64,000 nt of DNA, from positions 13,609,608-13,673,607 of the forward strand of contig NW_026943821.1 of the NCBI RefSeq assembly GCF_035594765.1, written 5' to 3'. Source of the stretch: Anolis carolinensis. Taxonomy: Eukaryota. Below are positions 13,163-61,963 of this stretch, piece by piece. The notes beneath the pieces are model-generated. The model was given only the letters and a program-made list of their open reading frames with translations, was not told the origin of the DNA and did not search any database. Each line of letters begins with the position of its first letter. Positions within the stretch are counted from its first letter, which is position 1. The translations under genes were made by a program, and so were the position numbers.

Positions 13163-14497
13163 TTAGTTGGAAACACTTTTGTGTCCAAGATTCCTCTCAA
13201 ACTTGGATCTGGCATCACCTCTCACAAGCTGCATATTGCAGTAGATGGCACTGTTCTCATCCATGGTCTGGTGGACTCTCATGTTGAATGAAGACTTTTT
13301 CTCCTTTTCTTGCTTCTCTTCCTCCTCCTTCTGCTTCTTCTGAAGCCTATAAATAAATTTTATCAGAAGGGGCTTGTCAGAACAGATAGTGATTATAAGA
13401 AAGTGTTAGATGGTTCATAGGTGAACACAGTTGAGGTGAGGAAGGACTGACCTGGATAAGCAGAGGCCAAGCAAGAAAACGCTTGCTGTAATCAAAGAAC
13501 CACAGACGGCAGAAACAAGGATTGTCACATAGGCACCTGCAATGGGGAAAAATGAAATCACAGAGAATTGGGCCAAGAATTTCAATTCCTATCCTCAGGT
13601 GAGTCCCCACAAAGCTTCTCTTCTATAAAAGCACACACTGCGGCGATTGCTTTGGACAGCAGGATTTTATCACACGTGAACATCTTTGGAGTACATATCT
13701 TCAGGGTTTTGACTGTGCATGCTATTAAAATATTTGCCAATACATTCAACATCATTCTCTGATTTTAATATCACTGTGGACCTTTGTAAGTGGAAATAGT
13801 TGGAATTAGATTTAGCAATCTACAGGAGTTAAACAGCTTCAGCTTGTGCAGAATCAGAATTTGCAATATATTAAGTAATTGGAGGATGAGCTCTTTGAAC
13901 CAAATTTATCAAAATTCATGGAATGCTTACAGGAAGTCAATCTTAATAATTAGCTGATCCCTACTAGGAATGGGAGGCCGTGATGGCGCAGCGTGTTAAA
14001 CTTCTGAGCTGCTGAACATGCTGACCAGAAGGTTGGCAGTTTGAATCCTTGGGACAGGGTGAGCTCCTGCTGTTAGCCCCAGCTTCTGCCAACCTCGCAG
14101 TTCAAAAACATGCAAATGGGAGTAGATCACTAGGTACCACTTTGGCGGGAAGCTAACGGCACTCCATGCAGTCATGCCGGCCACATGACCTAGAGGTGTC
14201 TATGGACAATGCCAGCTCTTCAGCACAGAAATGGAGATGAGCACCATCTTGACTAGACTTAACGTCAAGAGGAAACCTTTACCTTTACTAGGAATGTATG
14301 AGACTTTTATTTTAATTTTCATTTTGTCAGGTTTCACTAACATTTGCAAATTTCAGTCTGATAGGTTTACCCATAGCTAGTAAACATTATCTAGACTGCC
14401 CCCAAAATTTCAAGCAAGCATAATTTTTAAAGTGCAGATTTGCCTGAGCCCTTTCTAGGATTCTAAACATAGAACTCAGACAAATCATATCAGTGTT

Positions 14498-14546
<49 letters not shown>

Positions 14547-15253
14547 CAACAACAACAACAACAACTTTATTTGTATTCTGCCCTCTCTCCCCGACTATAG
14601 TCTTGGCCTGAGGCTTGAGACAGTAAAGCCTCCCCCCCCCCCCCCCCCAACTTGCTGGCTCCAGTAAGTTTGGATTAATACAGATCAGATACGAAGCAGG
14701 ATGTATATGGGCAGACAGTAATTCAAATCCAGACATTTGCTGGATTTTGCACAGAACCCAGTGAGAGGCTGCTCTAGATAGCAACAAAGGTCTAGGAAGA
14801 ACTCTGAAGGAACTTTACCTTTTGTTGGGGAGCTGAGCCAGAAGTGCACAGCATAGGTTCCAAAAGGATTGGATCCAAGACAGATGAGGGGTTGTCCCCT
14901 TTCCAAGCTTCCACTATAATTCAAGGAGCTGACAATCTCATTTGTATGGACCCAAGACATGATCTGCAGGGCTCCTTTGGTGCTATTGCCACTGAGGGTC
15001 TCTCCTTCCATTTGCCATTGGATCTGGGCTGGTACCTGGGACTGAAAGGAGCAGATGCAGAACAGGACATTGTCTTCATGCATGCAATTGGCTGGGTGGG
15101 TGCTGCTAGGCTGGAGGGGATCTGGAATGGACCATAAAGAAAAGCAATAAAGAGCAAAGCAAAACAGCATTTGATACCACAATAACTACAATTTTTTTTC
15201 TTTTGGAACCCTGAAATAGCAGCAGCAGAAACAACAACAACAACAACAACAAC

Positions 15254-15295
<42 letters not shown>

Positions 15296-15720
15296 CAGGC
15301 TAAGCATCCTTTATCCTGGAATTTCAAAATCTGAAATTGTCCACCTGGATGGCTAAGCTAATGACACCCTTGCATTCTGATGGTTCAATGCACACATTAT
15401 TTGTGCACACAATTATTTAAAATTATTTAAAATTGCCATTGTTATACTGCATTTTATTGTCCATTTCAACTGTGAAATTACCTTTCCCCATTTTGGCACA
15501 TTCTGCACTTTGCCCAGGATTTATGATAGTCTCCAGTTTTTAACATTGTATGCTTCTTGCTGATTTTAATGACTGTTTTTACTGATGTTGATGTTTTTAT
15601 TGGGTTAATTGTGCTTTTGCTTTGTTATTGATATTTGTTTGTTGTATCGGGCAAGGCCCCATGTAAGCCGCCCCGAGTCCCTTCGGGGAGATGGGGCGGG
15701 GTATAAAAATAAAGTTGTTG

Positions 15721-15763
<43 letters not shown>

Positions 15764-17125
15764 ATATTGTATAACATTAGATCCAGAAATGCAGCACATC
15801 ATCTTTTCCTTTTGACATTATGCTTATGCGAAAAAACAGGAAGTGTGAGAACATATGTTTCCTGCTCTTTCACATCATCTCTATTACAGGTAGAGCAGCT
15901 CTCATTCCATAGTCAAGGAATCAATAAAGAAGATGCTTGCCTGTCATGAAAACTTGAAGTGTTTTGTGATAAAAACTGTATTTTAAGATATTTCCTTGTT
16001 CGACTCTAAAGTAGTATGATCCTTCATCCTCTAACTGGGCATCATTGATCCAAAAGGAGCAGTTGCCTTGCTCTAGATCCCCATCTAAATGGATCCGGTT
16101 CTTAGTGGATTCCTTAATGGTTTGTCCTTCCTTGTTGGTGGTCATGAGAAGATCTGGTTTGCTTTGGCTGGGGACTGAAGCGCATTGGAATGGCTCTTCC
16201 TTACTCTTAAACCAGTAACCATAGAATGTTGAAAAGTTATTTACATGTTGTTTGTTATAAGTGAACTGGCAAAGGATGTGAACATCGAGACCTCGCTGCA
16301 CAGAGACAAAGGCAGATGCTGTCAGTGTATAACCTGCATGCTGGCTTAGCACACCTGTCAGGAGAAAGAATGAACATGTTAATATCTTGGTGGACATGTT
16401 GATATATAAAATCCAGTTTGGCACATTAGTCCTTCACTAGTGCTATCAAGGTATTAAAAGGGCCATTGGACACAATGACAATGAGCACAGTAACCACAGA
16501 GTGTTAACAAATAGAATCATAAATTGCTTTCGGGATGCTTCTGAAACTCGTTTTGCAAATCTTGATTATCCTTATCCACATTGTATTTTTGACTCTTTGT
16601 AGTTCTCAATTATTTCAGTATTCACCTATATTCTATTTTAATCCTAACTACAGTAAAGCTATTGAATCCACTGATTTTACTTACCATATTTATTCTAATA
16701 TACTGTGTGTTTGAATGTAAGGCACATCTCAATTTTGAAGCTGTGCATAACAATTCCAAAAAAGGATTTGCTGTTGAATGTAATGTAATGTGAGGTGGTG
16801 GTAGCCACAAATAGGCTGGTGGAAAGCCATGCCCCTCTGTCTGGTCTTCCCACCAATCTTTTCATAGTCACCGCTTCTCCTCTGTCATAAGTTGGGATCT
16901 CTTGACCAATAGGAAAGATGGCTTTAGGTGCACAATTCCAATGCTCTGATGTTACTTGGCCATATACCTTCCAGTTTTCATTTGTGAAATATTAAAGGTA
17001 TCCTACATTTCATCCAGATGTCTTCCATGAGATTAAACTCACATTTTGGGGTACCCTTGTGGTGCATCGCACATACCTTTGGACAAAAAGATCCACACTG
17101 CTATAAAACAGATCTGATTTTTCAT
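13163..17125 (-). CDS. Siglec-like receptor A (signal, V-set, membrane-proximal Ig, uncharged TM, tyrosine-motif tail)
   Basis: Exons: 17077-17125 signal MKNQICFIAVWIFLSKG; 15941-16354 V-set (VSVQRGLDVHILCQFTY..YGYWF..TN..GNCSF.I.DA..EDEGSYYFRVE) with GC donor; 14819-15121 Ig (NC...LFCIC...IQW...GNST...SSL...LIC); 13452-13536 TM GAYVTILVSAVCGSLITASVFLLGLCLSR; 13163(or 13226)-13346 tail ..ENSAIYCNMQL. All phases join in frame. The 3' end is uncertain (possible extra exon 12560-12778). Confidence 0.75.
13973..14285 (+). mobile_element. Sauria-type SINE in a Siglec A intron
   Basis: Full-length; TSD tactaggaatg at 13962-13972 and 14286-14296. Confidence 0.9.
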
Positions 17126-20100
17126 TTTCCAGGAAGATTCCACTAAGATCAAAGTCATCTTTCCCCCAGAAATCCAGCTGGAATTGGACTTTTCATCTTC
17201 TGCGGAATGAATTCTGTTGCAAATAGAAAGCATCACAAACCACAAAGAGTATAATTTTATCAACCCTGCTTGTAAATGAGTAAAACAACAAAGGAGGTTG
17301 TTACTGTTGTTTCATTAGGTGATAGGCGTTCCTAACAATTTTATGAAATTGAGATGATCATTTATAGCTATTTGTAGGAGTTCCATGACGTGGAATAAAT
17401 CTCCTTTTCCCAAAACAGAATGAAATTTCATCCAATTCCTGAACAAAAAGTGCCATTATGTTTTCATGTCACTAAGATAGTCAGTAGTTGTGTGCAGTCT
17501 TCAATATCCACAAAAGTCTAATGCACATAAATGTTTGTGATTATTACATGAATAAATCAATTTAGCTTTTAGTGATGAAAACATAGAAAACAATTATTTC
17601 TGCAATACTTTGTAGTAAAAAATGTTAGTGTTAGAGAGATTTTCTGAATTAGCAAGATCAGCATTTAATGGTATCCTTTCCGATCCATTGCCATTATACT
17701 GTTATTGCCCCTATTCTTTTTCTTCCTATCTGTGATGTGAAGGAGAAGGAAGAGGACAGTGTTGCACTAGAGCTCTGAAACACCTTTTCACCACAAACCA
17801 CACTCTGTCCAGGTAATCCAGTAAGTAAAAGTTGATTAAGAGAAGAGTATATAAAATAAGAAAATCTAAAAAGGAGAATCAAAGTTCAAAAAGTTGTTTC
17901 CAAGATAGCCAAGATTCCATAATCCTTTGTACCAGCAGAAAACCACTTAAAAGGCCTCAAATCCTCCCATGACATCATTCCTCACACACCTGCTTTTCCT
18001 CTCCTTATCTCTAAGCCACTGGGAAAATCGAGTCTGTCTCTGTTGTACACTCTGCCTCTGAAGTGCCAAGCACCTTATCTGGACAGACATTAATCTCCCA
18101 CATTTCTTTCAGCCTGCACTTCTCGCAGACTCTCATGAGAACTGATATAGCTTTCTCTAGTCTCCAAAAGATTCGAAAACAACACTCTCCAGGCCATTTA
18201 ATCCCATTCAATTTGGATTTTATACAGCTGTGTGGAACGGGCCTAAGGCTCCCTGTCTAGCCGTTCTTACCCAAGAACGGAAACATTCAGTGTTTCCAGA
18301 TCCTGCTAGCAACTTCTAGATCTGATCAGACCTAAAATATAGATACAGAAACAGCGAAAAAAGCAAAACAAGAGTGGCATAAGGCAATGTCTGTCAAGTG
18401 TATGCATATCTGTAACAATGTTGAGTTCCAAACAGGTCAATAAAGCTTGCATTAATCCTGTCCAGTGATTTAAAAGTATCACTTCATTTTGGGGTCAGCC
18501 CAAAAAACTGTATAGATAGAAATATCCTATTTTCAGCTTGCAGAGAAAAAGATCTGTCCAAGTTTCAGAAAACATAGGTTGCCAAGGAAGCAATGGAGGA
18601 TGTGGTCAGTTAGTCTGAAATAACTTCAATCACACTGATAACAAGCCATAATCTTTAGGATCACTGAACCATGTGACAAAGTGATTTTTTCAGCACACAA
18701 GCTACCAATGTTTCCTTTGGGTTGTAAGGGGGGAGAAATGCTCAAAAATGAATATACAGGCAGTCTCCGAGCTAGACATACCAGATTTACAAATTATTTA
18801 CAGTTAAGAATGGGGGGTGAGACAACAGGAAGTCAGAGAAATCTATCCCTAGAAAGGAAAATTCACTCCTGAAAGAGTTACCATGGGGAAAAGGTGTCTC
18901 CACTGAAGCTTTATCTGCAGTACATGTTTCCATAACAAGTAATTTTTAAATGCAACCATCCAGACTGAAAAAAATGACAGACCTTATTTTGTTCCTAGCT
19001 GCCTACACTTTGAAACATGTTTCATCTTGTAACCTCTCTATACAGATCGAATATGTCCTGGTCATGGGTTGAGACCTGACCAAAGCTGTTGATTGTCATT
19101 GTTCTTGAAAGACACTCATACAAATACCAAAAATCAAAACTGATTTCAAGGGAAATAACACATAACAACATCTCCTTTGTGATCTACCTTTTTAGGCATC
19201 CCTGCAATACAGTTATTTCCAAACTTTGGGTCTTCAGGTGTTTTCGAACTTCAGCTCCCAGAATTACTGCTGGTTGGCCAAACTGCCTGAGACTTTTGGA
19301 AGCTGAAGTCTAAAACAACTTTAAGAACAGAAAATCCTTTAGTAGGTCAATCTATAGAGTACAACCACTTTTTAAGGATCTACATTTTGGATACTAAAAC
19401 TTGGATATTTCAAAAGCAGCAGAAGAAATAGGGACTCTCCCTGGAAAAAAAACAAGGGTAGAGAGTTAATATTTTTGAAAGCATTGTATTTGTGTAAATA
19501 AAGCAAATGGAGCATCTACCTCAGTCAACAGATATGGGGCTTCACAAAAGGCAAATAAGTGGTTTTTCTTTAAAACAATGTAAAAAAAATTTGAGAGGGC
19601 TTGTGGGACTTTCTACCTTATACAACATTGCCATGGCTTTGGGTATTACACAGCTTGACATGGATAAGTGGAACCTCAGAGCCAGCAAAATTGTTGGGTT
19701 ACAATATTTCTCATTGTAAATCTTCATCAAGGTTCATGTCACATAACGATGACGACGACGACGACAACAACAACAACAACAACAACAACAAAAACAACAT
19801 ATTTGCTATCTGTTTCTTTTCATGGCTCAAGGCAGGGTAGAACACAGCCAAAATATGTATACCAAATTGTAAAGTACAAAGGTTTAAACATGATACCAGT
19901 AGAATATAAATTCAAAATTCACAAGGGACACAAGCTTTACAAGTTCTCAGAAAGTACATATTATGCAACCATTCTCTGAACGACTGTTTTTAGGAAATGA
20001 GTTTAAGAAACTTATGTTCTTAGATATTAGATAAGCAGTTCAGAAGAATAATTGCTGTGAGACAGACACTATTTGTTCATTTCTTGCTAAAATACCCTGT

Positions 20101-21386
20101 GCTCTCGGGTCTTAGTCACTTCAGCCCTGGAAGTTCTGATGGCAACCATTTAAAGACCAGCAGATCCAAATTGTCAAGTAAGTTGATCTATTATGGGATA
20201 ACAGAAGAAGGGATTTGCCAGGAAAGCCATTTATTTCTTTTAGTTACTAGTCCTTGCTCTAGAATGTAAGAATTTCAGATAGGAAAAGATGGGATTTTGG
20301 CATCAGAATTATAATATGGAATATGACATATTACACATAATAACGTTAAAGATGATGAGACTATAGATACATAGAATAGTTAACAAAAACAGAGAAACAG
20401 CAGTTGATGTTTATCCTTCTAATGTATTTGTGGACATCCAAACTGATTGTAAAACATAAACGTTACTTGTTGAAAGAGTTAACCCCTTGCCCAAATTAAA
20501 TATATAGAGAAAATATACAAGTACACTTTTCAACAACAAAAAATCAGTTTACAAAAAATAATTTGCAGGGGATTGGAAGGATAATCCCCTATGGCTTAAT
20601 AATTCACATACTCAATCAGTTTCATAACTGTAATTGTAATACGATATAATACTAATAATACAATATAATACTTATATATTATATTTTACATGTAATATTA
20701 CTAATAATATTACAATATATTGATACAGTACAATATAGTAGTTTATTACCAGTATTGTATTATGCTAATATAATATTGTATGTAAATTTAATTTGTAAGC
20801 CGCTCTGAGTCCCCTTCAGGGCGAGAAGGGTGGCATATAAATGTAGCTAATAAATAAATAAATAAATAAATAAATATGAATTTTAAACTGCCATTTTATT
20901 GGTACAGATTATGGAATTTGTTTACAAAAGGTACCAAATATATCTGAACAAATTTTATAGGAATTGGGGGGGTGGGGGAAAACATTCTGAGGATATGCGT
21001 TTCTTGGTTACAAAATGTGATTTTCCAAGCCAAAGTGATTTAATATATTTTGGTAGTTTTGATCTGTACTACTCATAGATCATTTTTTTTTAAATTGATA
21101 CCTTTTGGGAAAAAATTCACAGTTGTTTAAATACTTTTTAAATCTTACTTCTAAGTCTATCTATCATCTATCTACACATACATACACTTTATGTATTTCA
21201 ACTATGTCATACCCCTCCTCGAGCCTTGAGGAGAGGTGGATGAAAAGTAAAACATAACTGCCAACTCAAAATATTCATCTAATAAAATTACATCTTGATC
21301 ATGAAAGTGTGTGTCACATTTAGAGAAACCATGGTGCTTTAGATGCAGTTGGACTACAATACCCATCAGTCCATATCAACCTTGAT

Positions 21387-21656: not shown

Positions 21657-21939
21657 TATCAACCTTGATGAGCATGACACAGAATAAGAAGGATGATATT
21701 TTATAACTTCCATAATTTTGCTTACTTGTTTTCAAAGATTTTATATGGCATGGTCTACTTCTGTTCCAGGAATGCTTTGCTTCCCAGCAGATTCCAGTAG
21801 AGTCAAATGTTATTTCCCCTTGGTCATAACTACTCAACAATTGTCAATTTATTTGTTCTGTACCTGCTTCTTGTCTCCTCTTACTTCCACATCCTTCTTT
21901 TCACCAGATCTCCATCCTCTTCCAGGACCTTGCGGACAA

Positions 21940-23019
21940 ATGGACAAGACAAAACCCATGAAATATATTTCAGTCAAGGAAATGAACACCAGCAACAACT
22001 CAGAAGATGAAGTTTCCATTAACATAGCCCTTGGCTCCTTTATCTTAGTGTCTTTTCTGGTGGGGATGGCTATAAATGGGACCATTCTCTGGTTGCTGTG
22101 GATGAAGATGACGAGAACCGTGAACACACTCTGGTTCCTCCATCTGACTCTCTCCTATTTGATTTCCTGTTGTACTCTCCCATTCTTTGGCATCTCCAAT
22201 GTCCTCAATCTCCGCTGGATCTTTAAGGATGCCATGTGCAAGCTTTCTGTCTTCTTCATTACTCTGGGGATGGTCTCCACAGTCTTCCTACTTGCCACCA
22301 TCAGCCTGGACCGCTACCTCCTTATCTGCCATCCTGTCTGGTCCCAACACAATCGAACAATACCTCGGGCATGGAGACTGATCATAGGGGCCTGGCTTCT
22401 TTCTGTGTGCATAAGTGCTCCTTACTTGGCTTTCTCTAAGACTCGAGAGGTGGAAAACTATGGAAGCATATGCACAGTTAATTATACGGTCTATGAAAAG
22501 TGGGATGGAGATAAAATAGAACTGGCTTTCATTGTGGTTCGGTTCTTACTGAACTTCTTGCTTCCCTTCTTCACCATCATGTTCTGCTATTGTTCAATGG
22601 GTTGGAAAATGAAGAAGAAAAGGTTGGTGAGGACAGGGAAGCCCTTCAAGGTGCTCGGGGTTGCTGTGGCATCCTTCTTCATCTTCAGGCTTCCCTTTTA
22701 CCTCTATATGTGTTTCCTTCTGATCCACAAGGAGACATCACTACGAGAGACTCAAGAACATCTGCGGATAATCTTTCACATTGGAGTCTGCCTGAATATT
22801 TGTTTTACTCCTTTTATCTACCTCTTTGTTGGAGAGAAATTCCAACAGGTCTTCAAGACATCCATTGTAGTTCTGCTTAAGAAAAGTTTCACAGAAAGCC
22901 CCAGCATGCTTTTGGAAACTGCAAGTCTTAGAACAGAAGACATGCGGACTAGCAACAACAGCAGCAGCAACAACTTGGAAATGGTGACTATTCATGGGAA
23001 AGATCGCCCACTTTTGTGA
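21940..23019 (+). CDS. GPR33: GPR33-like chemoattractant GPCR copy 1, 359 aa
   Basis: GPR33 signatures: TVNTLWFLHL.LSY (no D2.50), ISLDRY..HPVWSQHNRT, RFLL.FLLPF, KPFKV...V.SFF, F(T/S)P..YLFVGE.F..VFK.SI. Acceptor cctcttccag ends at 21925, before ATG 21940. Confidence 0.85.
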   Translation: MDKTKPMKYISVKEMNTSNNSEDEVSINIALGSFILVSFLVGMAINGTILWLLWMKMTRTVNTLWFLHLTLSYLISCCTLPFFGISNVLNLRWIFKDAMCKLSVFFITLGMVSTVFLLATISLDRYLLICHPVWSQHNRTIPRAWRLIIGAWLLSVCISAPYLAFSKTREVENYGSICTVNYTVYEKWDGDKIELAFIVVRFLLNFLLPFFTIMFCYCSMGWKMKKKRLVRTGKPFKVLGVAVASFFIFRLPFYLYMCFLLIHKETSLRETQEHLRIIFHIGVCLNICFTPFIYLFVGEKFQQVFKTSIVVLLKKSFTESPSMLLETASLRTEDMRTSNNSSSNNLEMVTIHGKDRPLL

Positions 23020-26848: not shown

Positions 26849-27808
26849 CACTACTCCTATAATGTCTAGTGGTTGGCTGCAATCTGCATGGCTTGATTTT
26901 CTACATGGCTGAACCAGTTTTACGATATTGGGGTTGGAGAGAGCCATGACCAGCATTGGGCTCTGGCAGCCACCCAAGAAAAACCAGTACAGAAAACATC
27001 AGTCTGAGTCCTAAAACTCCACTTATTCCATTGCACTCAGAGGAACTGAACTCTGATGGATGTGTTTGATAAGGCTGCACAAATGTTACATAAACAATAG
27101 GCACAATAAATAATGGAATGTTCACTCTGCAGAAAAGAGAAGTCATTTTTATTGTTTTGTTTTGTTGCATTTTCACTTCTGAAAGCCACTTTAGTTCAAC
27201 ATTACTCGGTGTTTAATATACATGACCTTCAGGGCTGGTTGATATGTTCATTCTGTTGCCAAAGACCAAGACACTTCAACTGCCCTGGTTTGAGAAGGAC
27301 AATTCCAATTAAATGTTTGTCATCCCACTTGTTTTAGCTGCTTTTAAAGGTCCCAGTTTTTCTCTTCTCTTCCACCCTTCCTTTATTTTCAGCATTTTTC
27401 ATTTGCTGCAAACAGAGTTCAAAATACAAAAGTATTTGTCCTCAACTTTAACTCACCGGGAGAGAGAGGACAGGAGGGGGGCTTGCATATTGCCCTTTCC
27501 AGAAGCATTAGTCAAAAGCAAATTGCTGCAGCTTTTCAAACCTATGTCTCAGTTTTCATCTGGAGGTTATGGTGGTGTGAAAGGTACAGATCAAAACATC
27601 TGGAAGACCAAATATTCCTCATGCTTGCCTTTAAAAATTCAGAATTTTCCTTGAACACAAAGGTATTCATGTTGCCATACCATTTACAACCCACATTTAT
27701 GAGTTTCAAAACCAAGCTTAACAGTTGCTCTCCTCTTAGCTGGAATTGATGGGATCATATATGCATGTGCCTTTGGGTTCCTCTGCCACTTGACAAGAGT
27801 TCATTGGA

Positions 27809-47239: not shown

Positions 47240-48036
47240 TGTTTGTTTATTAATTTATTTGCAGTATTTATATTCTGCCTTTCTCATCCTAAAGGGCGGA
47301 TCACAGAACACACATTCAATGCAATTTATATACAGTAGAGTCTCACTTATCCAACATAAACGGGCCGACAGAACGTTGGATAAGCGAATATGTTGGATAA
47401 TAAGGAGAGATTAAGAAAAAGCCTATTAAACATCAAATTAGGTTATGATTTTACAAATTAAGCACCAGAACATCATGTTATAAAACAAATTTGACAAAAA
47501 AAGTAGTTCAATACGCAGTAATGCTATGTAGTAATTACTGTATTTACGAATTTAGCACCAAAATATCATGATATATTGAAAACATTGACTACAAAAATGG
47601 CTTGGATAATCCAGAACGTTGGATAAGCAAGTGTTGGATAAGTGAGACTCTACTGTATTGACAAAACATACAATTGTACATAGAATAGAGGTATATATAG
47701 GTTTTTTCCATCTTTGACATCTTGGAGGCTTGTGCTCGGTTTCAGCAATGGAGGAGTGCTGTCGCTCCATCTCCCTGCCGAAGAGCTTTGCTCATAAACT
47801 TCCTCCTTGATTGAATCGTCAGCATTTTTCTGGCATTTCCTTATGGATGCCTTAATACCTCCCCATTTTAAAGGGGTACCTATTTATCTACTCACATTTT
47901 GCCTTCCAACTGCTAGGTAGGCAGAAGCTAAACTAAAAGCCAGGAGCTCACCCTGACTCAAGCTTTGAACTATCAACCTTTTGATTGACAAGATTTACTG
48001 CAGCTTGTGGTTTAACCTGCTGTACTAAAGCCTGGC
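47240..48036 (-). mobile_element. tRNA-derived SINE (same family as 37945-38410) split by a mariner MITE (47333-47655)
   Basis: Head sequence matches the 37945 copy; the MITE has TIR cagtagagtctcacttatccaa and TA flanks. Confidence 0.75.
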
Positions 48037-51000: not shown

Positions 51001-54000
51001 TTATTAATATTAAGTTGGTTTTGTAGCACTCTCATTATGGAGAGACACAATGCTTTGAAGCAACAGTCTGTTGCTGTTTCCCCATCTTGAAGACATGGAC
51101 AGAGGTGGGCTCGAACAACAAACATGGCTCATATTTGAATTTATGGCCACCAAAGTTTTGCCCAGGGTTTAGTAACACTAAAGCACTCCTGATTAAGAAC
51201 ATGAACATTCACAGGTTTGCCTTTTTATTCCCCAACAAAACAGAAGTGCTTTGCAAAGGGTTCTTCTTGGGTTTCCTGTCTTGGGCAACACAGTGTAAGT
51301 AATATTTAACATGCAAGCATACACAGGATATAGTGTGAGTAATATTACCCACAACGATTTCATATACACAAATGTGCATACACACACACAGTGATCCAAA
51401 GGCCATCAATTGCATGAAAGAAAATTCTTTACAAAATCGTATAATGTAGATTACTTACAACCACAAAATATCAAACCTGTTTTAAACAAAATATTTTAGA
51501 CATACAAACACACACATATGTTAATCAATATCTGCTCAATTTACATACAGTTAATAGAAGCATGGAACAAAACTTTACCTTGCTTAACTCATCCCCACCC
51601 AACAATGTGCTGAGTTGTTTGGCAGTCTATTGTATTTTACACAGTCTATTATATTTTCACTAGCTGTGCCCGGCCACGCGTTGCTGTGGCGAAGTATGGT
51701 GGTATGGGAAATAAAGTATTGAGGAATTGGTGGTAGTTAAGGTAAAGGGTAAAGTCCATTATAAATAGGTTATATAGCTGTGTGGAAGGGCCTTGAGTCT
51801 ACACTGCCATATAATCCAGTTAAATAAGATAATCTGTATTTTATAGGCAGTGTGGAAGAGGCCTAAGTGAGGCCTAACTCTGCCTGTCCCCTGGGCTGAG
51901 TGGGTTGCTAGGAGACCAAGTGGGCGGAGCTTAGCCTTCTAGCTGGCAGCAATTGGATAAAAACAATTATTCCTTATCCCTCTAATTAGGAATTTATTTT
52001 TCTTTTCTTTTTGTTGTATGAAGAGGATGAGGGGTTGTGCTGGCAAGTTTAGTGTTTCTGGGTTGTGTAGTTTGTTGTTATGTCCTAGGCCGAAATTTCA
52101 TTACCCTTTTATATATATCGATTGAAATGAGAACTCATTTCAGCTAACCAGATCAGATGTGAACAACAATGCTCTTTCTACAATATATTATGAATATAGT
52201 AGCCACTCACATCGGACGTTCAGATTGATAGTTCTTTCTCTGTAGAATTGGCTGGTTCCTGTTCCATAGCGGACAGCACAGGTGATTTTCTGCCCATCGT
52301 CTGATGCTGAGGGAATAAAGTCAAGCACAGAGGTGTAAACCTGGGGTCGCCTTTCAGAGGTCCTTGGTGTGAAATGTCTAAACATCATCTTCCATGAGAT
52401 ATGTGGAGGCTTCAAGACACAACTTCCCGGGACTGTACAAGTGATGTTTACAGGATGGTTTGCCCGAAGATTCCCAGAAACCTCTATTGCTGGATCTTGC
52501 AGTTCTAAGGAAGGAGAAGAAGGGATTTTTATCAGTATTCCCAACAGGCCTGTATCTTCTCACTAGTTGTGGTTCATCTCAGAAGGAACAGAACATTGTT
52601 GTCATTATTTCTGTTCCAGAAGAATATACCGTAATACATTTAGTTTTTTAATCTTTGATGTTCCAGGAGATAAGGAATCAGAAAAGGTAAAGGAGAAAGC
52701 CACTGGATTGCAACCTGGAAACTATTCTATATACAAAAAAGTCAAATAGTAGTTGGCCTCACTTTAGAAGAATCAGGAAGTGGTTTAACTCAAGATTCCT
52801 TTGCAATATTTGTTATGACACAAACATGACCTGCACTGTACATTCACAGACCTAATGGGCATCATTGTGGAAAAGTGTCGCATTTTTAGCAAAAAGCAAG
52901 GCAAGAAAAATGAACACAGATGAGAGGTGAGAGACAAAAGTAGCAGGAGGAATATTTTAATAGCTCCATGGACACATGAAGAGGCTCTGTAGGTTGCCTT
53001 TTTCTTAAGCGTGGGGGGGGGGGTATGCACAAAGGAGGGTATAGGGGTTTGATTTAGGACTAGCCATCTGTGCTTTGAATGCGATTTCCTGCTTCTTGGC
53101 AGGGGGTTGGACTGGATGGCCCATGAGGTCTCTTCCAACTCTACTATTCTATGATTCTATGATTCTATGACTACTTACAATGGCGCAGCGGGTTAAACCG
53201 CTGAGCTGCTGAGCTTGCTGACTGAAAGGTTGGTGAGCTCCCACTATTAGCCCTAGCTTCTGCCAATCAAGTAGTTTGAAAACATGCAAATGTGAGTAGA
53301 TCAATAGGTATCACTTCTGCGGGAAGGTAACAACGCTCCATGCAGTCATGCCAGCTACATGACCTAGGAGGTGTCTATGGACAAAGCCGGCTCTTCGGCA
53401 TAGAAATGGAGATGAGCATCAACCCCCAGAGTCAGACATGACTAAACTTAATGTCAGGGAAAACCTTTACCTTTACCTTACAGTTATGAAAACAGCGTCA
53501 GTTGGAGTTAGAAAGAAACATAAACCCCAACATGACCACTAAAGATTTTTATTCTATTTGCAATACTCTTGGGATTCTGGATATTTGGATGCCCATGGGA
53601 AGCTGGGAGTCTGGGCCTCTTTGTCCAGCTTGCGGTCAAGATTCTCTAAGGACTGTGCACAGGTGGGACCTCCTCTCCCATTCCAAGAGTCTTATAGTCT
53701 TTTAGTCTGTCTCTCTTTAGTGGAAAGATTATACTCATAAGCTTCATTGTCCAGATAATGGAGGACTCCATTATTACAGTGGGAGCCCATTTTTTCAGGC
53801 CTACATTTAGTGAGTATTCAAAAAGATGTCTGCAAATGTTCAGTATTGCCTCTCTAGAGGACCCTAGAGCATCTCAACCAATCAGAAACTACATTTATTT
53901 GGCAGTCCTCTGTAAATTATTGTACATATCTATAAATAAAATGAAATCATTGCCACAGATAAAAAAGGAGATGTTGATTTGAGGATGACACAAGAGTCTC

Positions 54001-54946
54001 CACACTCCTCTGATTCCTTTGCAAATTGAATTCCCGAAAGGTGCACAGGGTCGAAAGCCAAATCATCCTTTCTGCTCTGGAATCGACAGGTGCTTTCCCC
54101 CATTAAACATCTCTTGTTGATCCCAGTGCTCCCTGTTTCACCTTCCTACACTTCTATATTTGTTTGTGTCACAATTATTGTGCACTGCATTTCATGGAAT
54201 GGTTTATTCAGAAGATCATGTTGGCCAAGAGATGGATCTAAGAAGCTGTGAGATGAACATTAGGAGTCATAGCAGCTGCGCTACAACTAGCAGTGAATGT
54301 ATTTGTGTATTTCACTAGAAGCTTTTATGGGAGCCAGATGTTTTTATCACCACTCACCTTTTACATTCACTTGCAGTTCGCTCCGGAAATTAAACTTTGC
54401 TTTAGGATCTTTCTCTATTCTAAAGCAGTAGTTCCCTCCATCATTATTTTGGGCATCATTGATGACAAGAGAACAGTTGCCTTCTTCCACTTCCTCTGAA
54501 AGAAAAAAGCGATTTCGAGCATTTTCTGCTATAGTTTTGTTTGGGTCATTGGTGGCCACTAAAGAAAGCGACTCAAAACAACTTCCCTTGAACCAGTATC
54601 CATACATTTTGGAAGTGCTTCGGGCATCATTTGGGTCATAAGTGAAGTTGCAGGGGATGAAGACACAGAGTCCCTCTTGGACTGTCACAGGTTGGACATA
54701 AAGCGTATATAGTTTTATGTCACACTGTCCACCTGGAAAGAGAGGACAAGAAGCTCAACGATACAGGCAAAGAACACCAGACTTACACCTTCCCCTTACT
54801 GGAAATGATGGGATGATCATTTCCATCTCTGGGCCCAAACTAAGGCCCGGAGGCCGGATCAAAGCTATCTATCCGGCCCCCACGGCACAAGGGCAGAAGA
54901 GGGTTGGGCTAAATGACCCAAGGGGCCTCTTCTTCTTTTACAACCC

Positions 54947-55002
<56 letters not shown>

Positions 55003-55108
55003 ATTGAGGCTGGGTGGCCATCTGTCAGGGGTGCTTTGCTTGTGCTTTTGGTGCACAAAGGCAGAAGGGGGTTGGACTAAATGGCCAAAGGGGTCTCTTC
55101 CAACCCTC

Positions 55109-55165
<57 letters not shown>

Positions 55166-55497
55166 ATTGAGGCTGGGTGGCCATCTGTCAGGGGTGCTTT
55201 GCTTGTGCTTTCGGTGCACAAAGGCAGAAGGGGAATGGACTCAATGGCCCAAAGGGTCTCTTTCAACTCTTTTATTATTGTTGTTATTATTATTATTATT
55301 GCTCGGTGGCCAACTATAGTCCGGCCCTCTAACGGTCCGAAGGATCGTGAACTGGCCCCCTGTTTAAAACGTTTGGGGACTGCTGATCCAGAGAATGGAC
55401 TTCTCTCCCTCTTTTCAGTCTCCTCCCAGTTCTTACCCTCCCAAAAGAGACCAATTGAAAGAAGCCTGAGAACCAAGATTTCAAGGAGGTAATGCAT
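47948..55497 (-). CDS. Siglec-like receptor C (V-set + C2 + linker + I/C2, TM lysine), 449 aa
   Basis: Exons: 55437-55497 signal; 54358-54732 V-set (VTVQEGLCVFIPCNFTY..YGYWFK..VATND..NRFFL..GNCSLVI.DA..D.GNYCFRIE); 52211-52504 C2 (NITCTVPGSC..PPHISW..SVL.F.P...DDGQKITC.V); 50207-50257 linker YPPQ; 49310-49555 Ig (LHCKAKGNPSPNVTW..YKCRAEN); 48345-48420 and 47948-48194 split TM GSIVPLLLVLCLI-K-ALLCFFFFISII. All introns are GT-AG and in frame. Confidence 0.85.
49037..49171. mobile_element. hAT-type palindromic MITE
   Basis: Same family as 10150-10284. Confidence 0.8.
50572..50704. mobile_element. hAT-type palindromic MITE
   Basis: Same family as 10150-10284. Confidence 0.8.
51660..52121 (-). 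mobile_element. Short non-autonomous Helitron in a Siglec C intron
   Basis: Minus strand: A|TCgatatatataaaa ... gccacagcaacgcgtggccgggcacagCTAG|T. Confidence 0.8.
53070..53478 (+). mobile_element. CR1 3' tail followed by a Sauria-type SINE
   Basis: (ATTCTATG)n at about 53146-53170, then the SINE at 53178-53478 with (ACCTTT)n tail. Confidence 0.85.
54828..55385. mobile_element. hAT-like non-autonomous element with tandem CR1-tail-derived units and (TTA)n
   Basis: Ends cccaaactaaggcccg / aacgtttggggac; about three internal units ggccatctgtcaggggtgctttg...gggtctcttccaac separated by (TTA)n. Confidence 0.65.
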
Positions 55498-55632
55498 CTC
55501 TATTTTCTTTTCTTCTTTTATGTTCTCTTCTGGATAGAACTTCAATCTCTTATATCTCTACTGCTTGCTTAAGGACCCTATGACATGGAAAGAATGAGAA
55601 AGAAAAAGAAAGCATTGAAGCAGAAAGAATAA

Positions 55633-56508
55633 TTTATTTATTTATTTATTTATTATTTACAATATTTATATTCCGCCCTTCTCACCCCAAAGGGGACTCA
55701 GGGCGCATCACATAATGTACATATAGGGCAAACATTCAATGCCCATAAACACATCGAACTGAGAGGCTTAAAGAACTGGGCATGTTTAGCCTGCAGAAGA
55801 GAAGGCTGAGAGGAGACATGATAGCCGTGTACAAATATGTGAGGGGAAGTCATAGGGAGGAGGGAACAAGCTTGTTTTCTGCTGCCCTGCAGACTAGGAT
55901 GCAATGGAACAATGGCTTCAAACTACAGGAAAGGAGATTCCACCTGAACATCAGGAAGAACTTCCTCACTGTGAGGGCTGTTCGGCAGTGGAACTCTCTG
56001 CCACAGAGTATGGTGGAGGCTCCTTCTTTGGAGGCTTTTAAGCAGAGGCTGGATAGCCATCTGTCGGGGGTGCTTTGAATGTGATTTCCTGCTTCATGGA
56101 CTGGATGGCCCATGAGGTCTCTTCCAACTCTACTATTCTATGATTCAATGATTCTATGATTCTATGAGACAGAGACAACAGACAGACAGACGCAGAGGCA
56201 ATTTAACCTTCTCCTGAGGGGATGTTCGATTCTGGCCACAGGGGGGAGCAGCTGCTTCATCATCCACTCTGATGGCACTTCCTCATTCCAAGTCATAAAT
56301 TAGTTAAACTTCTATAAGTGGTACCTTATTTCCTACTTGATAGATGCAACTATCTTTCAGGTTGCTAGGTCAGCAACGAGCAGGGGCTATATTTTATTTT
56401 TAATTGACGGGTGCTCACCCCGCCACGGGCTGGCCTCGAACTCATGACCTCATGGTCAGAGTGATTTATTGCAGCAGCTGTTTACCAGCCTGCGCCACAG
56501 CCCGGCCC
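55633..56508 (-). mobile_element. tRNA-derived SINE interrupted by a CR1 3' end (about 55760-56165, +)
   Basis: Head ggggccgggctgtggcgcag at 56508; CR1 RT tail ORF 55782-56078 and (ATTCTATG)n; located directly upstream of the Siglec C ATG. Confidence 0.8.
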
Positions 56509-57849
56509 CAGATATAATGTCTCTTTTCAGGGAATGCTGAAACCAGGAAAATCCCGTATGCCTTACATTAAAAGCACATCTTTTCCTGATGGTTTCTTTC
56601 TGTCAATCCAAAATGGCATACCAGTTTTCCCATGGTTTGAAGATGGGAAAGGATCACCGTCACAACTGCATACTCTGGACAGAGATTTGGCGAGGACACT
56701 TTGGGGCTTCACTTATATTATTTGAATGTTTGTCTCCAAATAAAAAATGGAAGAGAGATCAAGCCCTGGAAGAAATAGAGAGAAGGAGCTCCTCAAAATA
56801 TTAGCAGAGGAAGCAAACTAATATATCAAAAAGGCAATTGACTGAACAATTTTAGGGAACCTGATATCTTGCTGAAGATAACTTACTGTGATTTCAGTGC
56901 TTTCTTATTTGAGACTGTGTAGTTGATTTTGATTTTTGGATGGTTAGCTATTATATCCACCAATTCAATTCTTAGAACCATGTTTTTTTTTCTCTATTTT
57001 TTTTCATCATTTTTAAATGCATTTGTTATGCAATGCTTTTGACACGAAATAAATAAACCCATGTTGATTCTTGCTATGACCATGGAAGAGAATTTATAAC
57101 CCTTTCCTGTCCAGTTGCATATAACTCTCCTCTCCCCACATGTGCTTCTCAAGGAAAGCCCACTGATCTGCTCATAACCTATGATAAAGTCTTGAACAAA
57201 TTGGTAGCATGTTGCTCTTTCTAACTAAGCAAATACATTTTCTCTTTGGTCTCTTATCCATTGCAGGAAAATATCTTAAGCTTTTCATGCTAATGTGATG
57301 GATCACACTCTAACCACTTTAATTTCTTGCTGGCACATTGTTGTATGCTTGAATAAAAACTAATTTAATGTAAAGACAGAAACATGCAAGGGCAGCCTTA
57401 GGACTGGTTTGAGGGCCTCACTCTAAAAGATGGAGTGAATCTATTCTGTCCAGATGACGAGTGTCTAATGCTTTGAGATAGAAAAATCCAGAATTTCGAG
57501 TTCTAATAGTTTGCAGTGTGTCTAAATAATTTTCTGCATCAGCTCCCATGTTTCTGTCTCAATGCACCTCCTATAATTGAGAACAAAACCAAAGTGGGTT
57601 GGCTTTCAAATACTCCTGCTCATCCCCATCCGGATCCCTCAAAATGAACCCCACTCACTTGATGGCGTTGTCCTGCTTGTCTTGAAACAGTTGTCCTCAG
57701 CACATCTTACTCTCCAGATCAGTATTTAGGACTGGAAGAAGGCTCTACAACTACAGCACATTTTAATCAAAAAGGAGAAACTCACGTTATGCAACCTGGG
57801 CAAAACCACTTCCTAATCTCCATTAGGGATGGCTAATACACCAGAAGAC

Positions 57850-59385
57850 AGGAACAGAATTCAAAACTTACTCTTGACACTTTAGAGAGATGATTAGGCA
57901 AAACTAACAAAATGAAGCTCAACAGGGACAAATGCAAGATACTCCACTTAGGCAGAAAAAATGAAATGCAAAGGTACAGAATGGGGGACACCTGGCTTGA
58001 CAGCAATATGTGTGAAAATGATCTTGGAGTCCTTGTGGGGAACAAGTTAAACATGAGCCAACAATGTGATGCGGTAGTTAAAAAAGCTAATGGGATTTAG
58101 GCCTTAATAAATAGGAGTCTAGTGTCTAGATCAGGGGTCCTCAAACTTTTGAAGCAGAGGCCTGGTCCACAAGCCTTCGGACTGTTGAGGGGCCGAATTA
58201 TCATTTGAAAAAAAATACGAACAAATTTCTATGCACACTGCACATGTCTTATTTTGATTGTTGTTCAAAACAGCAACAACAGTAATGAAAGAACAATACA
58301 ATATTTTAAAAGGAAAACAATTTTAACCAACATAAACCTATCAGAATTTCAATTGAAAGTGTGGGCCTGCTTCTAGCCAATAAGATAGTCAAGTTAATTA
58401 GGATTGTTGTTGTTGTGTGCCTTCAAATCATTTCAGACTTTGGCCAAGCTCAAGTCTAAAATTAATTATTTATTTACTGCATTTATTTACTACATTTATA
58501 TCCCACCCTTCTCACCCCGAAGGGGACTCAGAGCAGCTGTATGTACATACGATATATTATATTATTAGCATAGCACAATATTAGCATTATATATTACTAT
58601 ATTGAACTATACCACTATAATGTAATAGTATATGTACTATATAAAATATAATTAATTAATACAATAACATAATATTATTATCAATATTATATGTATATAC
58701 AATATATTATATTATTAAAACTGATATAAACATATTATATTATAAAACTGAGGGCGGGGGCCAAGTAAATGACCTTGGAGGGCTGCATCTGGCCCCCGGG
58801 CCTTAGTTTGGGGACCTCTGGTCTAGATCCAGGGAAGTTGTGCTACCCTTCTATTCTGTCTTGGTCAGACCATACCTGCAATATTGTGTCAAATTCTGGG
58901 CACCGCAGTTGAAGAGAGATATTGACTAGCTGGAATGTGTCCAGAGGAGGGCGACTAAAATGATCAAGGGTCTGAAGAACAAGCCCTATGAGGAGCGGCT
59001 GAAAGAGCTGGGCATGTTTAGCCTGCAGAAGAGAAAGCTGAGAGGAGATGTGATGAGGCCCATGTATCAAGATGTGAGGGGAAGTCATAGGGAGGAGGGA
59101 GCAAGCTTGTTTTCTGCTGCCCTGGGGACTAGGACATGGAACAATGGCTTCAAACTACAGAAAAGATTCCACCTGAACATTAGGAAGAACGTCCTCACTG
59201 TGAGAGCTGTTCAGCAGTGGAACTCTCTGCCCCGGAGTGTGGTGAAGACTCCTTCTTTGGAGGTTTTTAAACAGAGGCTGGATGGCCATCTGTTGGGGGT
59301 GCTTTGAATGCGATTTTCCTGCTTCTTGTCAGGGAGTTGGACTGGATGGCCCACAAGGTCACTTCCAACTCTGTGATTCCATGAC
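57850..59385 (+). mobile_element. CR1 LINE 3' fragment interrupted by a hAT MITE (58132-58820)
   Basis: MKLNRDKCKILHLG..DLGVLV..KAN and IKGL..YEERLKELG..WNSLP; MITE TIR caggggtcctcaaact with 8-bp TSD gtctagat (58124-58131, 58821-58828). Confidence 0.9.
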
Positions 59386-59544
59386 TTTACTTGGGAGAGA
59401 ATTTTTTGAGCAACGTCATTCAAAGAGCAAAACTGTCTCATGCACATATCAACTAAGTCTCTTGAGGTGTTATAACAGCATTTTAGCTGACCATCTCAAA
59501 GATCTGGTCATGAACACCAAAAAACAGAACTTCAGTTTCATGTA

Positions 59545-59710
59545 ACTATAAATCAGGAAGTGGTTTGTATAAATAACTCATTTGCATCATGACCATACTT
59601 CGCATTTTTTCAGCTAGACTGTTTCACTATCTTGCAAATGTTGCCTTTCCATCCTGTATGGTAGAAAGGACTAAGAGTCACTATTTTGAGATAATTTGAT
59701 CAAGGCCACT
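59545..59710 (+). promoter_or_regulatory. Putative promoter of GPR33-like copy 3
   Basis: caggaagtggttt (ETS/RUNX-like) immediately followed by tataaata; homologous to 38855-39019. Confidence 0.5.
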
Positions 59711-60946
59711 CATTATATTGTCGCACAAAGATGATATTCTACACTAGTCACATGATTGTGGGTAATGGCAACATGCTGGGATGACTGCCCTTGCCATTGC
59801 ACCTCTTGGCATTTGCACACCTGCACCAATTCACTGACTTGTGGTCCCACAGCCATACTTCTGCTTTAGTCTCCTAGCAGATTTTCTGTCTGCTTTAGGG
59901 GATCATCATCATCATCACCATCACCATCTGTGGCTGGATCTGAAGATGCCAGCTACAGATGCAGGTGAAACATCAGGAGAAAATGCTGCTAGAAAGCAGT
60001 CATATAGTCCAGAAACCACAAACTGGGAGCACTGAATTTGGGGTGACTATGGGTTTTTTTCTTTGTGTATGGCTAGCCTGCCTTTAAATTTTTCCCCATT
60101 TGCTCTGTCACCTGTCGTGGTAGTGTATCTGGCCATAGTTACACTTTCATATGTGTCAGCACGTATAGAGTAATAGTCATCTCTCTCTTAATCTCTTTCT
60201 CCTCCATCAAGAAGGTGAGTGCAGGCTTTGGTGAGTTAGTCCTCTTTTTGGAAATTTTCTATAGTTTGCCACTGTGGTTAGATATGTTTGAATGTAGCTT
60301 TAAATTTAATTAGTACGGTTTTTAGGTATGCAGTTTGCTTAATACCTATTTGATTTACTTATCTAAAACTAGACTCAGTCTGCATCTACACTGTAAAATG
60401 AATGCAGTTTGACAGCATTTTAACTGTCATGGCTCAATACTATGGAACCATGGGTGTTTTAGTTTTACAAAGTCTACTCTGCCAAAGAGTGCTGATGCCT
60501 CACTAAACTACAAATCTCAAGAAAAACTGCACATCTAAATATCTGATAGCATTGGGTCATAGCCATTACAATAGTGTCAAATTGTATTAATTCTACGATG
60601 TAGATGCACCCTTAGAAAGACCCAACAATTCAGCACTTCCATTTGAAAGTGTATATGAGGCAGAGTCTTTATTGAGTCAGGCTTCATCTTTCTCAGGAAA
60701 AGAGCTAACATTTCAGGAAATCTGCTTCTAATACAACAAAAGCCTAGCGAGTTCAATTATTTTACTCTGAATGCTATATCCACTAAGCACAGAAAACCGA
60801 ATTCAGTATCCTATTTTCTCATCTTCTAGTGTTCTCAGCCTATGTGTTCTTATGCTGGTTTAGTCAACCGTAACCCTTTCTCACCATCTACCTGCAATTC
60901 AGACTTCTTTTCTGTCTTCCTTCAAGGCCTCATAGACACAAGCAGG

Positions 60947-61963
60947 ATGCCCTCTCTCTTGGAGAACACCTCAACTGTAAATATGAACAACAGCCATTTT
61001 CTAGAACCTTTCAAACCCACCAATGTGAGCATCACCATCCTTATCTTGGTGGCTTTTCTGATGGGGACAACTGTGAATGGGCTCTTCCTTTGGATGCTGG
61101 GGCTGAGGATGAAGAAGACAGTCAACACCTTTTGGTTCCACCACCTGATCCTCACCAACTTGATCTCCTGTCTCATTCTGCCCTTCTTTGCTGTCTACGT
61201 CCTTCATGATTTCCACTGGATTCTAGGGACCGTTGTGTGCAAGATTATAAAATCCTTATTTTCAATGGTCATGTTCACTACTGTTTTTCTTCTCACCACC
61301 ATCAGCCTGGACCGGTACTTCTTCATCTGCTATCCTGTTTGGTCTCGGCAGTACCGTACAATTCCCAGAGCAAAGAGACTGGTCACTGGGTTATGGCTCA
61401 GCTCCATAACCCTGAGTATTCCCAGTTTGGTTCTTCTGGAGACTCAAGAGGTGCAGAACAAGATGCAGTGTGATTACACTTTTGTTTTCTCCAAAGATGC
61501 ATCCTTTCACTTAGCTTTCTTCCTGGTTCAGTTCCTGCTAGCCTTCCTGCTTCCTTTCCTCACCATGCTAATATGCTACTGTTGGATCGGTTTTGAATTG
61601 AAGAGGAAGCACTTGGTGAAGACCGGGAAACCTTTCCGAATCCTGGTGACTGCAGTGGCATCGTTTTTCATCTCCTGGCTTCCCTACCACTTCTACAATG
61701 CTTTTCATTCTTTTCGGATAGCATCAGAAAGAACGAATCAGATTCTATGGGATATTGCCGCTGCTGGAGGCTGTTTCAATATTTGTTTCACCCCCATTGT
61801 TTATCTCTTTGTTGGGGAGAAGTTCCATCAGGTTTTCAAGATGCCTGTGATTTCCCTGTTTAGTAAATACTTTGAGGATTATCCTAGGATTCCTGGGGAG
61901 AATACCAACACTGGGCAGGAGCTTGACCATAGCCATGGAGAAACAACCAGAATGCAAAGCTGA
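60947..61963 (+). CDS. GPR33: GPR33-like chemoattractant GPCR copy 3, 338 aa
   Basis: VNGLFLWML..RMKKTVNTFWFHHL, ISLDRY..PVWS..RT, FLL.FLLPF, KPFRILVTAVASFFISWLPYH, FTPIVYLFVGEKF; acceptor tcttccttcaag upstream of ATG 60947. Confidence 0.88.
   Translation: MPSLLENTSTVNMNNSHFLEPFKPTNVSITILILVAFLMGTTVNGLFLWMLGLRMKKTVNTFWFHHLILTNLISCLILPFFAVYVLHDFHWILGTVVCKIIKSLFSMVMFTTVFLLTTISLDRYFFICYPVWSRQYRTIPRAKRLVTGLWLSSITLSIPSLVLLETQEVQNKMQCDYTFVFSKDASFHLAFFLVQFLLAFLLPFLTMLICYCWIGFELKRKHLVKTGKPFRILVTAVASFFISWLPYHFYNAFHSFRIASERTNQILWDIAAAGGCFNICFTPIVYLFVGEKFHQVFKMPVISLFSKYFEDYPRIPGENTNTGQELDHSHGETTRMQS

Follow-up and report, generated by a model that had tools for sequence, protein, structure and literature searches.

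The window analyzed here, a 64-kb stretch of Anolis carolinensis DNA (positions are those of the whole stretch throughout), holds three Siglec genes and three receptor genes of the GPR33 type in the series Siglec A(−), G1(+), Siglec B(−), G2(+), Siglec C(−), G3(+). Our results favor, with a probability that we put at roughly 0.7, the reading that the window is part of a CD33-related Siglec cluster in which an old GPR33 tandem array is embedded, and that the alternation arose by birth-and-death turnover; the locus would then be a commonplace cluster of immune receptors shaped by gene birth and death, rather than the product of duplicating a two-gene unit. Such a unit, a Siglec and a G protein-coupled receptor (GPCR) co-duplicated as a cassette, had been proposed in a preliminary description of the window, and the proposal is contradicted for units A and C by cross-species synteny: neither Sceloporus nor Elgaria has the C/G3 pair, G1 has a different Siglec partner in Sceloporus, and B/G2 alone is kept. 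Nor did self-blastn reveal the intergenic homology that the proposal would lead one to look for, since only dispersed repeats and matches between the GPCR coding sequences (CDS; 64-67% nucleotide identity) were found between units; this absence of spacer homology is weak evidence, as neutral homology would be erased at 45% amino acid divergence.

The alternating order and strands reported earlier match the window exactly, with the V-set exons on the minus strand and the three open reading frames (ORFs) that match Pfam 7tm_1 on the plus strand. The description of the genes as head-to-head pairs stands insofar as the members of each pair lie on opposite strands with facing 5' ends, but not as the sole parsing of the series. 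In A. sagrei a fourth Siglec is located on the minus strand downstream of G3, so that every GPCR has Siglecs on both sides and the head-to-head arrangement is one of two parsings. By our own arithmetic, strict alternation of three and three genes has a chance probability of 2/20; the alternation is therefore only mildly non-random and, taken alone, is weak evidence.

Gene order in other squamates and the age of the two families

The flanks of each GPCR were viewed over ±10 kb in five other species. In Sceloporus, where the loci are collinear with the window, the order is Siglec X(−), G1(+), a Siglec B orthologue(−), a G2-type gene(+) and, 4 kb further on, a G3-type gene(+) and Siglec Y(−); no Siglec exon was found between the G2-type and G3-type genes. 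The V-set of the Siglec B orthologue is 66% identical to that of the anole, and the protein is annotated with 228 residues and a V-set only. The other two of the three anole Siglecs are not at these positions in Sceloporus, the nearest sampled relative. The interval between the matches to window positions 12095-13151 and 18321-18759 is 0.43 kb in Sceloporus, compared with 5.2 kb in Anolis, where the additional stretch (13151-18321) holds Siglec A and has no counterpart at the collinear Sceloporus spot. Matches to 46540-46628 and 60765 are separated by 1.8 kb in Sceloporus and by 14 kb in Anolis, the 14-kb stretch being the one that holds Siglec C. A relic of the Siglec X V-set was sought at window positions 4000-13200, and none was found.

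In Elgaria, a G2-type(+) and a G3-type(+) gene likewise lie on the same strand, 4 kb apart, and a search for Siglec exons across 26 kb around the pair, including 10 kb downstream of G3, found none. Siglec C is still found upstream of G3 in A. sagrei, at a locus collinear with window positions 54289-62500; the C/G3 pair is thus present in A. sagrei and absent from both Sceloporus and Elgaria. The Siglecs downstream of G3 in A. sagrei and Sceloporus share 71% identity in one C2 exon and are by that measure orthologous, and the corresponding Podarcis gene (50-51%) is probably orthologous as well, whereas the C2 exon of Siglec A is only 40-42% identical to these post-G3 Siglecs. The conserved arrangements are limited to the G1-Siglec B-G2 neighborhood and to the convergent pair of G3 and its downstream Siglec.

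Podarcis muralis has, between its G2-type and G3-type genes, a stop-containing V-set relic(−) beside a GPCR fragment(+) (L008:6634-8754). The fragment is 80% identical in nucleotides to Podarcis's own G2-type gene, and the V-set relic is closest to a Podarcis Siglec; being closest to genes of the same species, the two look like a decayed local duplicate that arose in a lacertid-specific event.

The tree analyses assign G1-G3 to GPR33 and indicate that the copies are old. In a tree of 73 sequences, the three fall in a clade (support 100) together with Loxodonta and Chinchilla GPR33 and the single-copy turtle GPR33, apart from CMKLR1, the FPR-like receptors, C3aR, C5aR and the clade of G0, a further receptor gene of the window that is described below. 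A careful tree of 40 sequences recovers the same GPR33 clade with support 100/100. There are three copies in the anole, 2-5 in other squamates and one in the sampled turtles and mammals. In the 40-sequence tree, a G3-type clade (100/99) comprises genes from Podarcis, Rhineura, Elgaria, Varanus, Sceloporus and both anoles, and a G2-type clade comprises genes from a skink, a cordylid (Hemicordylus), Zootoca, Varanus, Elgaria and the anoles; judged from these memberships, the split between the two types predates the divergence of lacertids, anguids, varanids and iguanians. Among the sampled species, G1-type genes are seen only in Sceloporus and the anoles (orthologues P0043 in Sceloporus and P0039, 80-81% identical, in A. 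sagrei), and the geckos have two GPR33 clades of their own. The branching order among the five GPR33 lineages is a polytomy: G1+G3 appears in the maximum likelihood tree at 57/71, and approximately unbiased (AU) tests reject neither G2+G3 (p=0.37) nor G1+G2 (p=0.22), five unstably placed rows (Tiliqua P0007, Hemicordylus P0014, Pogona P0021, Phrynocephalus P0029 and Salvator P0031) having been excluded from the tests. As a consequence of this polytomy, congruence between the Siglec and GPCR trees cannot be scored.

The Siglec side, on the other hand, is strongly structured. In a careful V-set tree, the V-set of Siglec A (VA) falls in clade I (100/98) with those of Sceloporus Siglecs X and Y and gecko sequences, and those of Siglecs B and C (VB and VC) fall in clade II (96/95), such that the topology (A,(B,C)) is strongly supported and the split of VA from VB/VC predates the divergence of the geckos. 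VB is sister to the Sceloporus B orthologue (100/99). VC belongs to an anole-only group (100/100) with a second A. carolinensis gene, whose locus (L010) is part of the same 28.4-Mb contig and shows no GPCR over 39.6 kb; the sister of this group is a phrynosomatid gene (P0337/P0340), and the Sceloporus GPR33 loci (L005 and L006) do not encode P0337. The squamate Siglecs in this tree are not one-to-one orthologues of named mammalian Siglecs. By tree position and domain content, Siglecs A, B and C are old and distinct lineages with different architectures.

Explanations for the alternating order

On the birth-and-death reading, a single GPR33 gene located in or next to the CD33-related Siglec cluster would have undergone tandem duplication early in squamates, prior to the divergence of Scincoidea, Laterata and Toxicofera, giving same-strand copies (G2-type and G3-type) that would originally have been direct neighbors about 4 kb apart. 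Around these copies and in the gaps between them, the set of Siglecs from the two old V-set clades would have kept changing, as genes were duplicated locally, relocated, altered by gene conversion or lost. The clade-II Siglec C would have come between G2 and G3 in the anole lineage, and the clade-I Siglec A occupies the 5-kb segment upstream of G1 that is absent in Sceloporus; the Siglec-GPCR-Siglec-GPCR-Siglec-GPCR pattern would be the chance sum of these separate events. Uniform strands, with the Siglecs on minus and GPR33 on plus, would be expected from direct duplication within each family, and each gene would have its own promoter, 5-10 kb from its neighbor across repeat-rich spacers.

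Several points weigh against this reading. The Podarcis relic could mean that a Siglec between G2 and G3 is old and was lost twice, and the flanks viewed in the five other species extend to only ±10 kb from each GPCR. The branching order of the GPCRs is not settled by the trees. The V-set exons are homogenized between paralogues, such that the V-set tree may miss whole-gene history and may make the Siglec C gene look younger than it is; furthermore, Siglec C has a transmembrane (TM) and tail part similar to that of Elgaria P0223, which makes its gene lineage an old one.

Of the other explanations, the one that survives best, which we nevertheless regard as unlikely, is that the duplicated unit was a convergent one, GPR33(+) followed by Siglec(−), giving G1+B, G2+C and G3+D, with the Siglec after G2 lost in some lineages. 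This proposal fits the conserved G1/Siglec B and G3/downstream-Siglec pairs better than does a head-to-head cassette: A. sagrei, Sceloporus and Podarcis all have a minus-strand Siglec after G3, with Siglec exons that are orthologous (in Podarcis probably so), and Sceloporus shares with the anole the succession of G1 and Siglec B. The minus-strand V-set relic after the Podarcis G2-type gene, the membership of both B and C in clade II and the failure of the AU test to reject a G1+G2 clade are also consistent with it. However, it requires independent complete losses in Sceloporus and in Elgaria, and no Siglec is present within 10 kb downstream of Elgaria G3. In addition, the post-G3 Siglec is of clade I, whereas B and C are of clade II, a split that includes gecko sequences, and the Podarcis relic looks lineage-specific.

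Somewhat less probable still, in our assessment, is that GPR33 and CD33-related Siglecs were already neighbors in the amniote ancestor and were kept together in squamates for a functional reason, for example because shared myeloid enhancers would drive a sialic-acid checkpoint receptor and an orphan chemoattractant receptor together, and that mammals lost the linkage when GPR33 moved away. If this were true, the anole alternation, the conserved G3/downstream-Siglec pair and the degenerate Podarcis pair would be traces of repeated joint duplication.

Linkage at the level of the cluster is widespread in squamates. GPR33 genes are directly seen among Siglec genes in A. carolinensis, A. sagrei, Sceloporus and Podarcis, and linkage is suggested in Varanus, where GPR33, G0 and a Siglec share one 1.86-Mb scaffold, and in Phrynocephalus, where Siglec locus tags 011590 and 011594 are next to the GPR33 tag 011595. 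A model from Notechis has an Ig domain fused with a G0-type receptor, and in the turtle Emydura, G0 and GPR33 share a 231-kb contig. No Siglec exon was found within ±10 kb of GPR33 in Emydura or in the gecko Eublepharis, a flank too short to exclude linkage. In mammals, GPR33 is on another chromosome from the Siglecs, and the human FPR genes flank the Siglec cluster without being interleaved with it. An FPR-like gene closely linked to the squamate locus was considered and rejected: the A. sagrei gene named CMKLR1 (P0128) shares the chromosome record but lies at a distance of about 80 Mb.

The head-to-head cassette itself, a Siglec(−)/GPR33(+) unit duplicated twice as a block to give A/G1, B/G2 and C/G3, is improbable. 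It would account for the strict alternation and uniform strands in the window, for the retention of the C/G3 pair in A. sagrei and for the position of Siglec B upstream of G2 in Sceloporus as well as in the anole. The degenerate Podarcis pair shows that pieces of both families can duplicate together, and the GPCR topology (G1,(G2,G3)) that the Siglec topology predicts is not rejected by the AU test. Against these points, no Siglec separates the neighboring G2 and G3 in either Sceloporus or Elgaria; the Siglec A segment is missing at the collinear Sceloporus spot, where the upstream partner of G1 is of another V-set lineage; the closest relative of Siglec C is the L010 paralogue, which has no GPCR nearby; the three Siglecs differ in architecture and VA separated from VB/VC before the geckos diverged; and homology between the intergenic regions is lacking. 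The alternative offered in the preliminary description itself, that separate Siglec and GPR33 arrays were interleaved by inversions, would be compatible with this lack of intergenic homology but is highly improbable, because inversion flips strands, whereas all Siglecs are on minus and all GPR33 genes on plus in Anolis, Sceloporus, Podarcis and A. sagrei and the collinear Sceloporus blocks keep their orientation across the breakpoints.

The birth-and-death reading carries a caution for annotation, as a regular alternation of two gene families can come from independent turnover, and cross-species synteny is needed before such a series is called a module.

Identity of the receptors and the Siglecs

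The features of the window are given in Table 1. The exons of the Siglecs were mapped one by one, with the structure of Siglec C taken from the public protein P0338.

Table 1. Positions of receptor genes, Siglec exons and other features in the 64-kb window
Feature	Positions	Strand	Basis or detail
G1, GPR33-type, single coding exon	ORF 21718-23019; CDS from first ATG 21940-23019	plus	Pfam 7tm_1 E=3.2e-42
G2, GPR33-type, single coding exon	44329-45351	plus	Pfam 7tm_1 E=1.3e-38
G3, GPR33-type	60236-61963; ORF 60842-61963; CDS 60947-61963	plus	modelled 5' exon ending 60277
Siglec A	13163-17125 (3' end as in the preliminary description)	minus	exon 1 ~17075-17125; V-set ~15933-16415
Siglec A, V-set match region	15921-16424	minus	Pfam V-set and Ig_CD22 match
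Siglec A, further exons	C2-like 14709-15203; candidate TM 13418-13588	minus	exon mapping
Siglec B	27805-34655	minus	exon 1 34593-34655; V-set 34070-34462 (Pfam V-set, Ig_CD22)
Siglec B, conserved 3' exons	~28292-28519 (TM-like); 27805-28004	minus	exon mapping
Siglec C (NCBI "Siglec-12" model P0338)	47951-55497	minus	exon-by-exon mapping
Siglec C, V-set match region	54347-54688	minus	Pfam V-set and Ig_CD22
Siglec C, exons	55435-55497; 54359-54733 (V-set); 52212-52505 (C2); 50208-50255; 49299-49556 (C2)	minus	
Siglec C, 3' TM/short-tail part	within 47951-48451	minus	one gapped match, 65% identity; exon bounds approximate
Non-coding conserved blocks upstream of G1	18321-18759; 19911-20214; 20244-20325		unique collinear blastn matches to Sceloporus, 73-74% identity
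LINE reverse-transcriptase ORF, 793 residues	41024-43405	minus	Pfam RVT_1 E=1.6e-40
G0, chemoattractant-type GPCR	ORF 2694-3881; feature 2694-3683	minus	Pfam 7tm_1 E=2.2e-47

All three of the receptors G1-G3 are intact and are predicted from their sequences to be chemoattractant-type receptors. The G3 ORF is 100% identical to the UniProt entry H9GSR9_ANOCA, "probable G-protein coupled receptor 33." Amino acid identity is 45-46% among the three and 39-40% with mammalian GPR33. A signature drawn from the present alignment, and without a literature source, sets the GPR33 clade apart: DRY in intracellular loop 2 and [S/T]PxxY in the seventh transmembrane helix (TM7), compared with DRC and NPxxY in relatives. 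G1 has DRY/TPFIY, G3 has DRY/TPIVY and mammalian GPR33 has DRY/SPxLY. In all sampled sequences of the clade, whether from mammals, turtles or squamates, the Asn position of NPxxY is occupied by Ser or Thr. DRY is present in nearly all of them, with DRC or DRF in a few; the related chemoattractant receptors all have DRC. The combination of Ser/Thr for Asn with DRY is thus a handy family signature. With the tree clade and these shared motifs, the earlier identification of the three GPCRs as GPR33 holds as a clade assignment. G2 deviates from the signature (DRF/TSSLY), DRF for DRY being that of A. carolinensis, and the TM7 proline is lost from TSSLY, compared with TPxxY in the rest of the clade; these changes and the long branch of anole G2 (0.52-0.57) suggest altered signaling or relaxed constraint.

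GPR33 is known as a mammalian orphan receptor that has undergone repeated pseudogenization, with pseudogenes in humans, other hominoids and some rodents (PMC13494238, PMC5956105, PMC11576641). The anole genes are like it in their shared clade, in the DRY and [S/T]PxxY(LYLF) motifs and in the single coding exon, but are present in three copies instead of one and lie inside a Siglec cluster. The presence of turtle and squamate members in the clade places the origin of GPR33 at or before the amniote ancestor; the original paper on the gene is said to have dated that origin to mammals. With 2-5 intact copies among fast-evolving Siglecs, squamates offer a natural system in which to study the ligand and role of GPR33. 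No paper was found on GPR33 in reptiles, on linkage of GPR33 with Siglecs or on squamate CD33-related Siglecs; the genes of the locus are already auto-annotated in public databases.

That the Siglecs are CD33-related is borne out by a V-set closest to those of the CD33-related Siglecs and by retention of the ligand-binding arginine. Among solved structures, the best matches for the V-sets of B and C (the two exons searched) were Siglec-5, -7, -8 and -10 and CD33 (E 1e-17 to 1e-23), with sialoadhesin (3e-6) and MAG (2e-4) far weaker. The ligand-binding arginine of Siglec-5 (YFFRVE) aligns with that of YCFRIE in Siglec C, and the corresponding strand F motifs are YYFRVE in Siglec A and YFFRME in Siglec B. 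The three ectodomains are V+C2 in A, V only in B and V+2 C2 in C. The C2-like exon of Siglec A has a tblastn match but no Pfam match, and a C2 exon was looked for in Siglec B over 27805-34655 without one being found; the C2 domains of Siglec C match Pfam C2-set_2 and Ig_3/I-set. The exon-1 peptide of B resembles that of C, and the peptide of A differs from both. Model P0338 is 96.5-100% identical to the window per exon through the second C2 exon and has a lysine in its TM segment and a short tail without an ITIM (a tyrosine-based inhibitory motif of immunoreceptors). The three Siglecs keep the arginine that would bind sialic acid but differ in ectodomain and probably in tail.

The paralogue of Siglec C at L010 (L010:9494-29580) has a tail with the ITIM LHYASL and with TEYAEI. 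Over the signal peptide and V-set the two genes are 70-80% identical, with 86% in nucleotides across the V exon and its flanks, compared with 33-46% for the C2 domains, and their tails are unrelated. A like gradient is seen between Elgaria P0223 and P0339, with 90-100% identity in the first two domains. The anole pair looks like activating and inhibitory Siglecs kept alike by gene conversion at their 5' ends. The likeness is to the primate SIGLEC5/SIGLEC14 pairs, Siglec C with its TM lysine and short tail being set against an ITIM-bearing paralogue with a similar 5' end; the difference is that the anole pair is known from its sequence alone. The locus as a whole shares with the mammalian CD33-related Siglec cluster a tandem same-strand family with variable C2 number and tails and fast turnover, and differs from it in that only in the squamate locus is a GPCR family interleaved gene by gene.

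Spacing, neighboring genes and public models

The Siglec ATGs, placed by the signal-peptide exons, are at 17125 (A), 34655 (B) and 55497 (C), giving ATG-to-ATG distances to the partner GPCR of 4.8 kb for A/G1, 9.7 kb for B/G2 and 5.45 kb for C/G3. The distance of 3-4 kb from Siglec ATG to GPCR promoter that had been estimated earlier is about right: the 5' exon of the public G3 model ends at 60277, leaving 4.7 kb to the ATG of Siglec C, and the block at 19911-20325, conserved with Sceloporus, is 2.8-3.2 kb from that of Siglec A. The conserved blocks within 18321-20325 are candidates for a G1 5' exon or promoter sequence. Classical bidirectional gene pairs have start sites less than about 1 kb apart. 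The anole pairs resemble these in their opposite strands and facing 5' ends but, judged on the ATG-to-ATG distances, are not classical bidirectional promoters, because their spacers extend over 5-10 kb and are full of repeats, including a long interspersed element (LINE). The LINE reverse-transcriptase ORF, which is uninterrupted, lies within the Siglec B-G2 spacer and explains part of the extra length of that spacer.

Four sequencing runs, none recorded as RNA, gave depth over 55301-61300 only on repeats, at 55.5-56.5 and 57.9-59.5 kb; the unique parts were empty or thinly covered and no splice joint was present at the G3 intron or at Siglec C exon 1, a result that is not evidence of silence.

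Two public models of the locus are chimeric and served only for locating exon 1. P0174 runs from the V-set of Siglec B through intergenic sequence into that of Siglec A (15924-17395 and 34073-34345), and P0329 joins exon 1 of Siglec C (55435-55497) to another V-set that is 68% identical to the V exon of the window. In A. sagrei, the Siglec C/G3 locus is found on two chromosome records of one assembly, L001 and L002 (CM073884.1 and CM073883.1), with 97-98% identity over 21 kb and identical G3 proteins; the two copies may be sex-chromosome gametologues or a haplotype duplicate.

There is no non-immune anchor gene among the genes of the window. The remaining gene, G0, lies to the left of the range covered by the preliminary description (13163-61963) and is 99.7% identical to NCBI model P0054. 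It shares 27-31% amino acid identity with G1-G3 and is not GPR33, falling in a clade of its own (support 100) with squamate and turtle genes, for which the public names are inconsistent (C3aR-like, CMKLR1 and FPR2-like). In this reptile-only clade (orthologues P0055-P0083), the Asp of DRY/DRC is replaced, with YRC in the anole, Elgaria, Varanus and a snake and HRC in Zootoca and the turtles; the gecko keeps DRC, and NPxxY is kept throughout. On these motifs, G0 may be atypical for a chemoattractant receptor or may couple differently.

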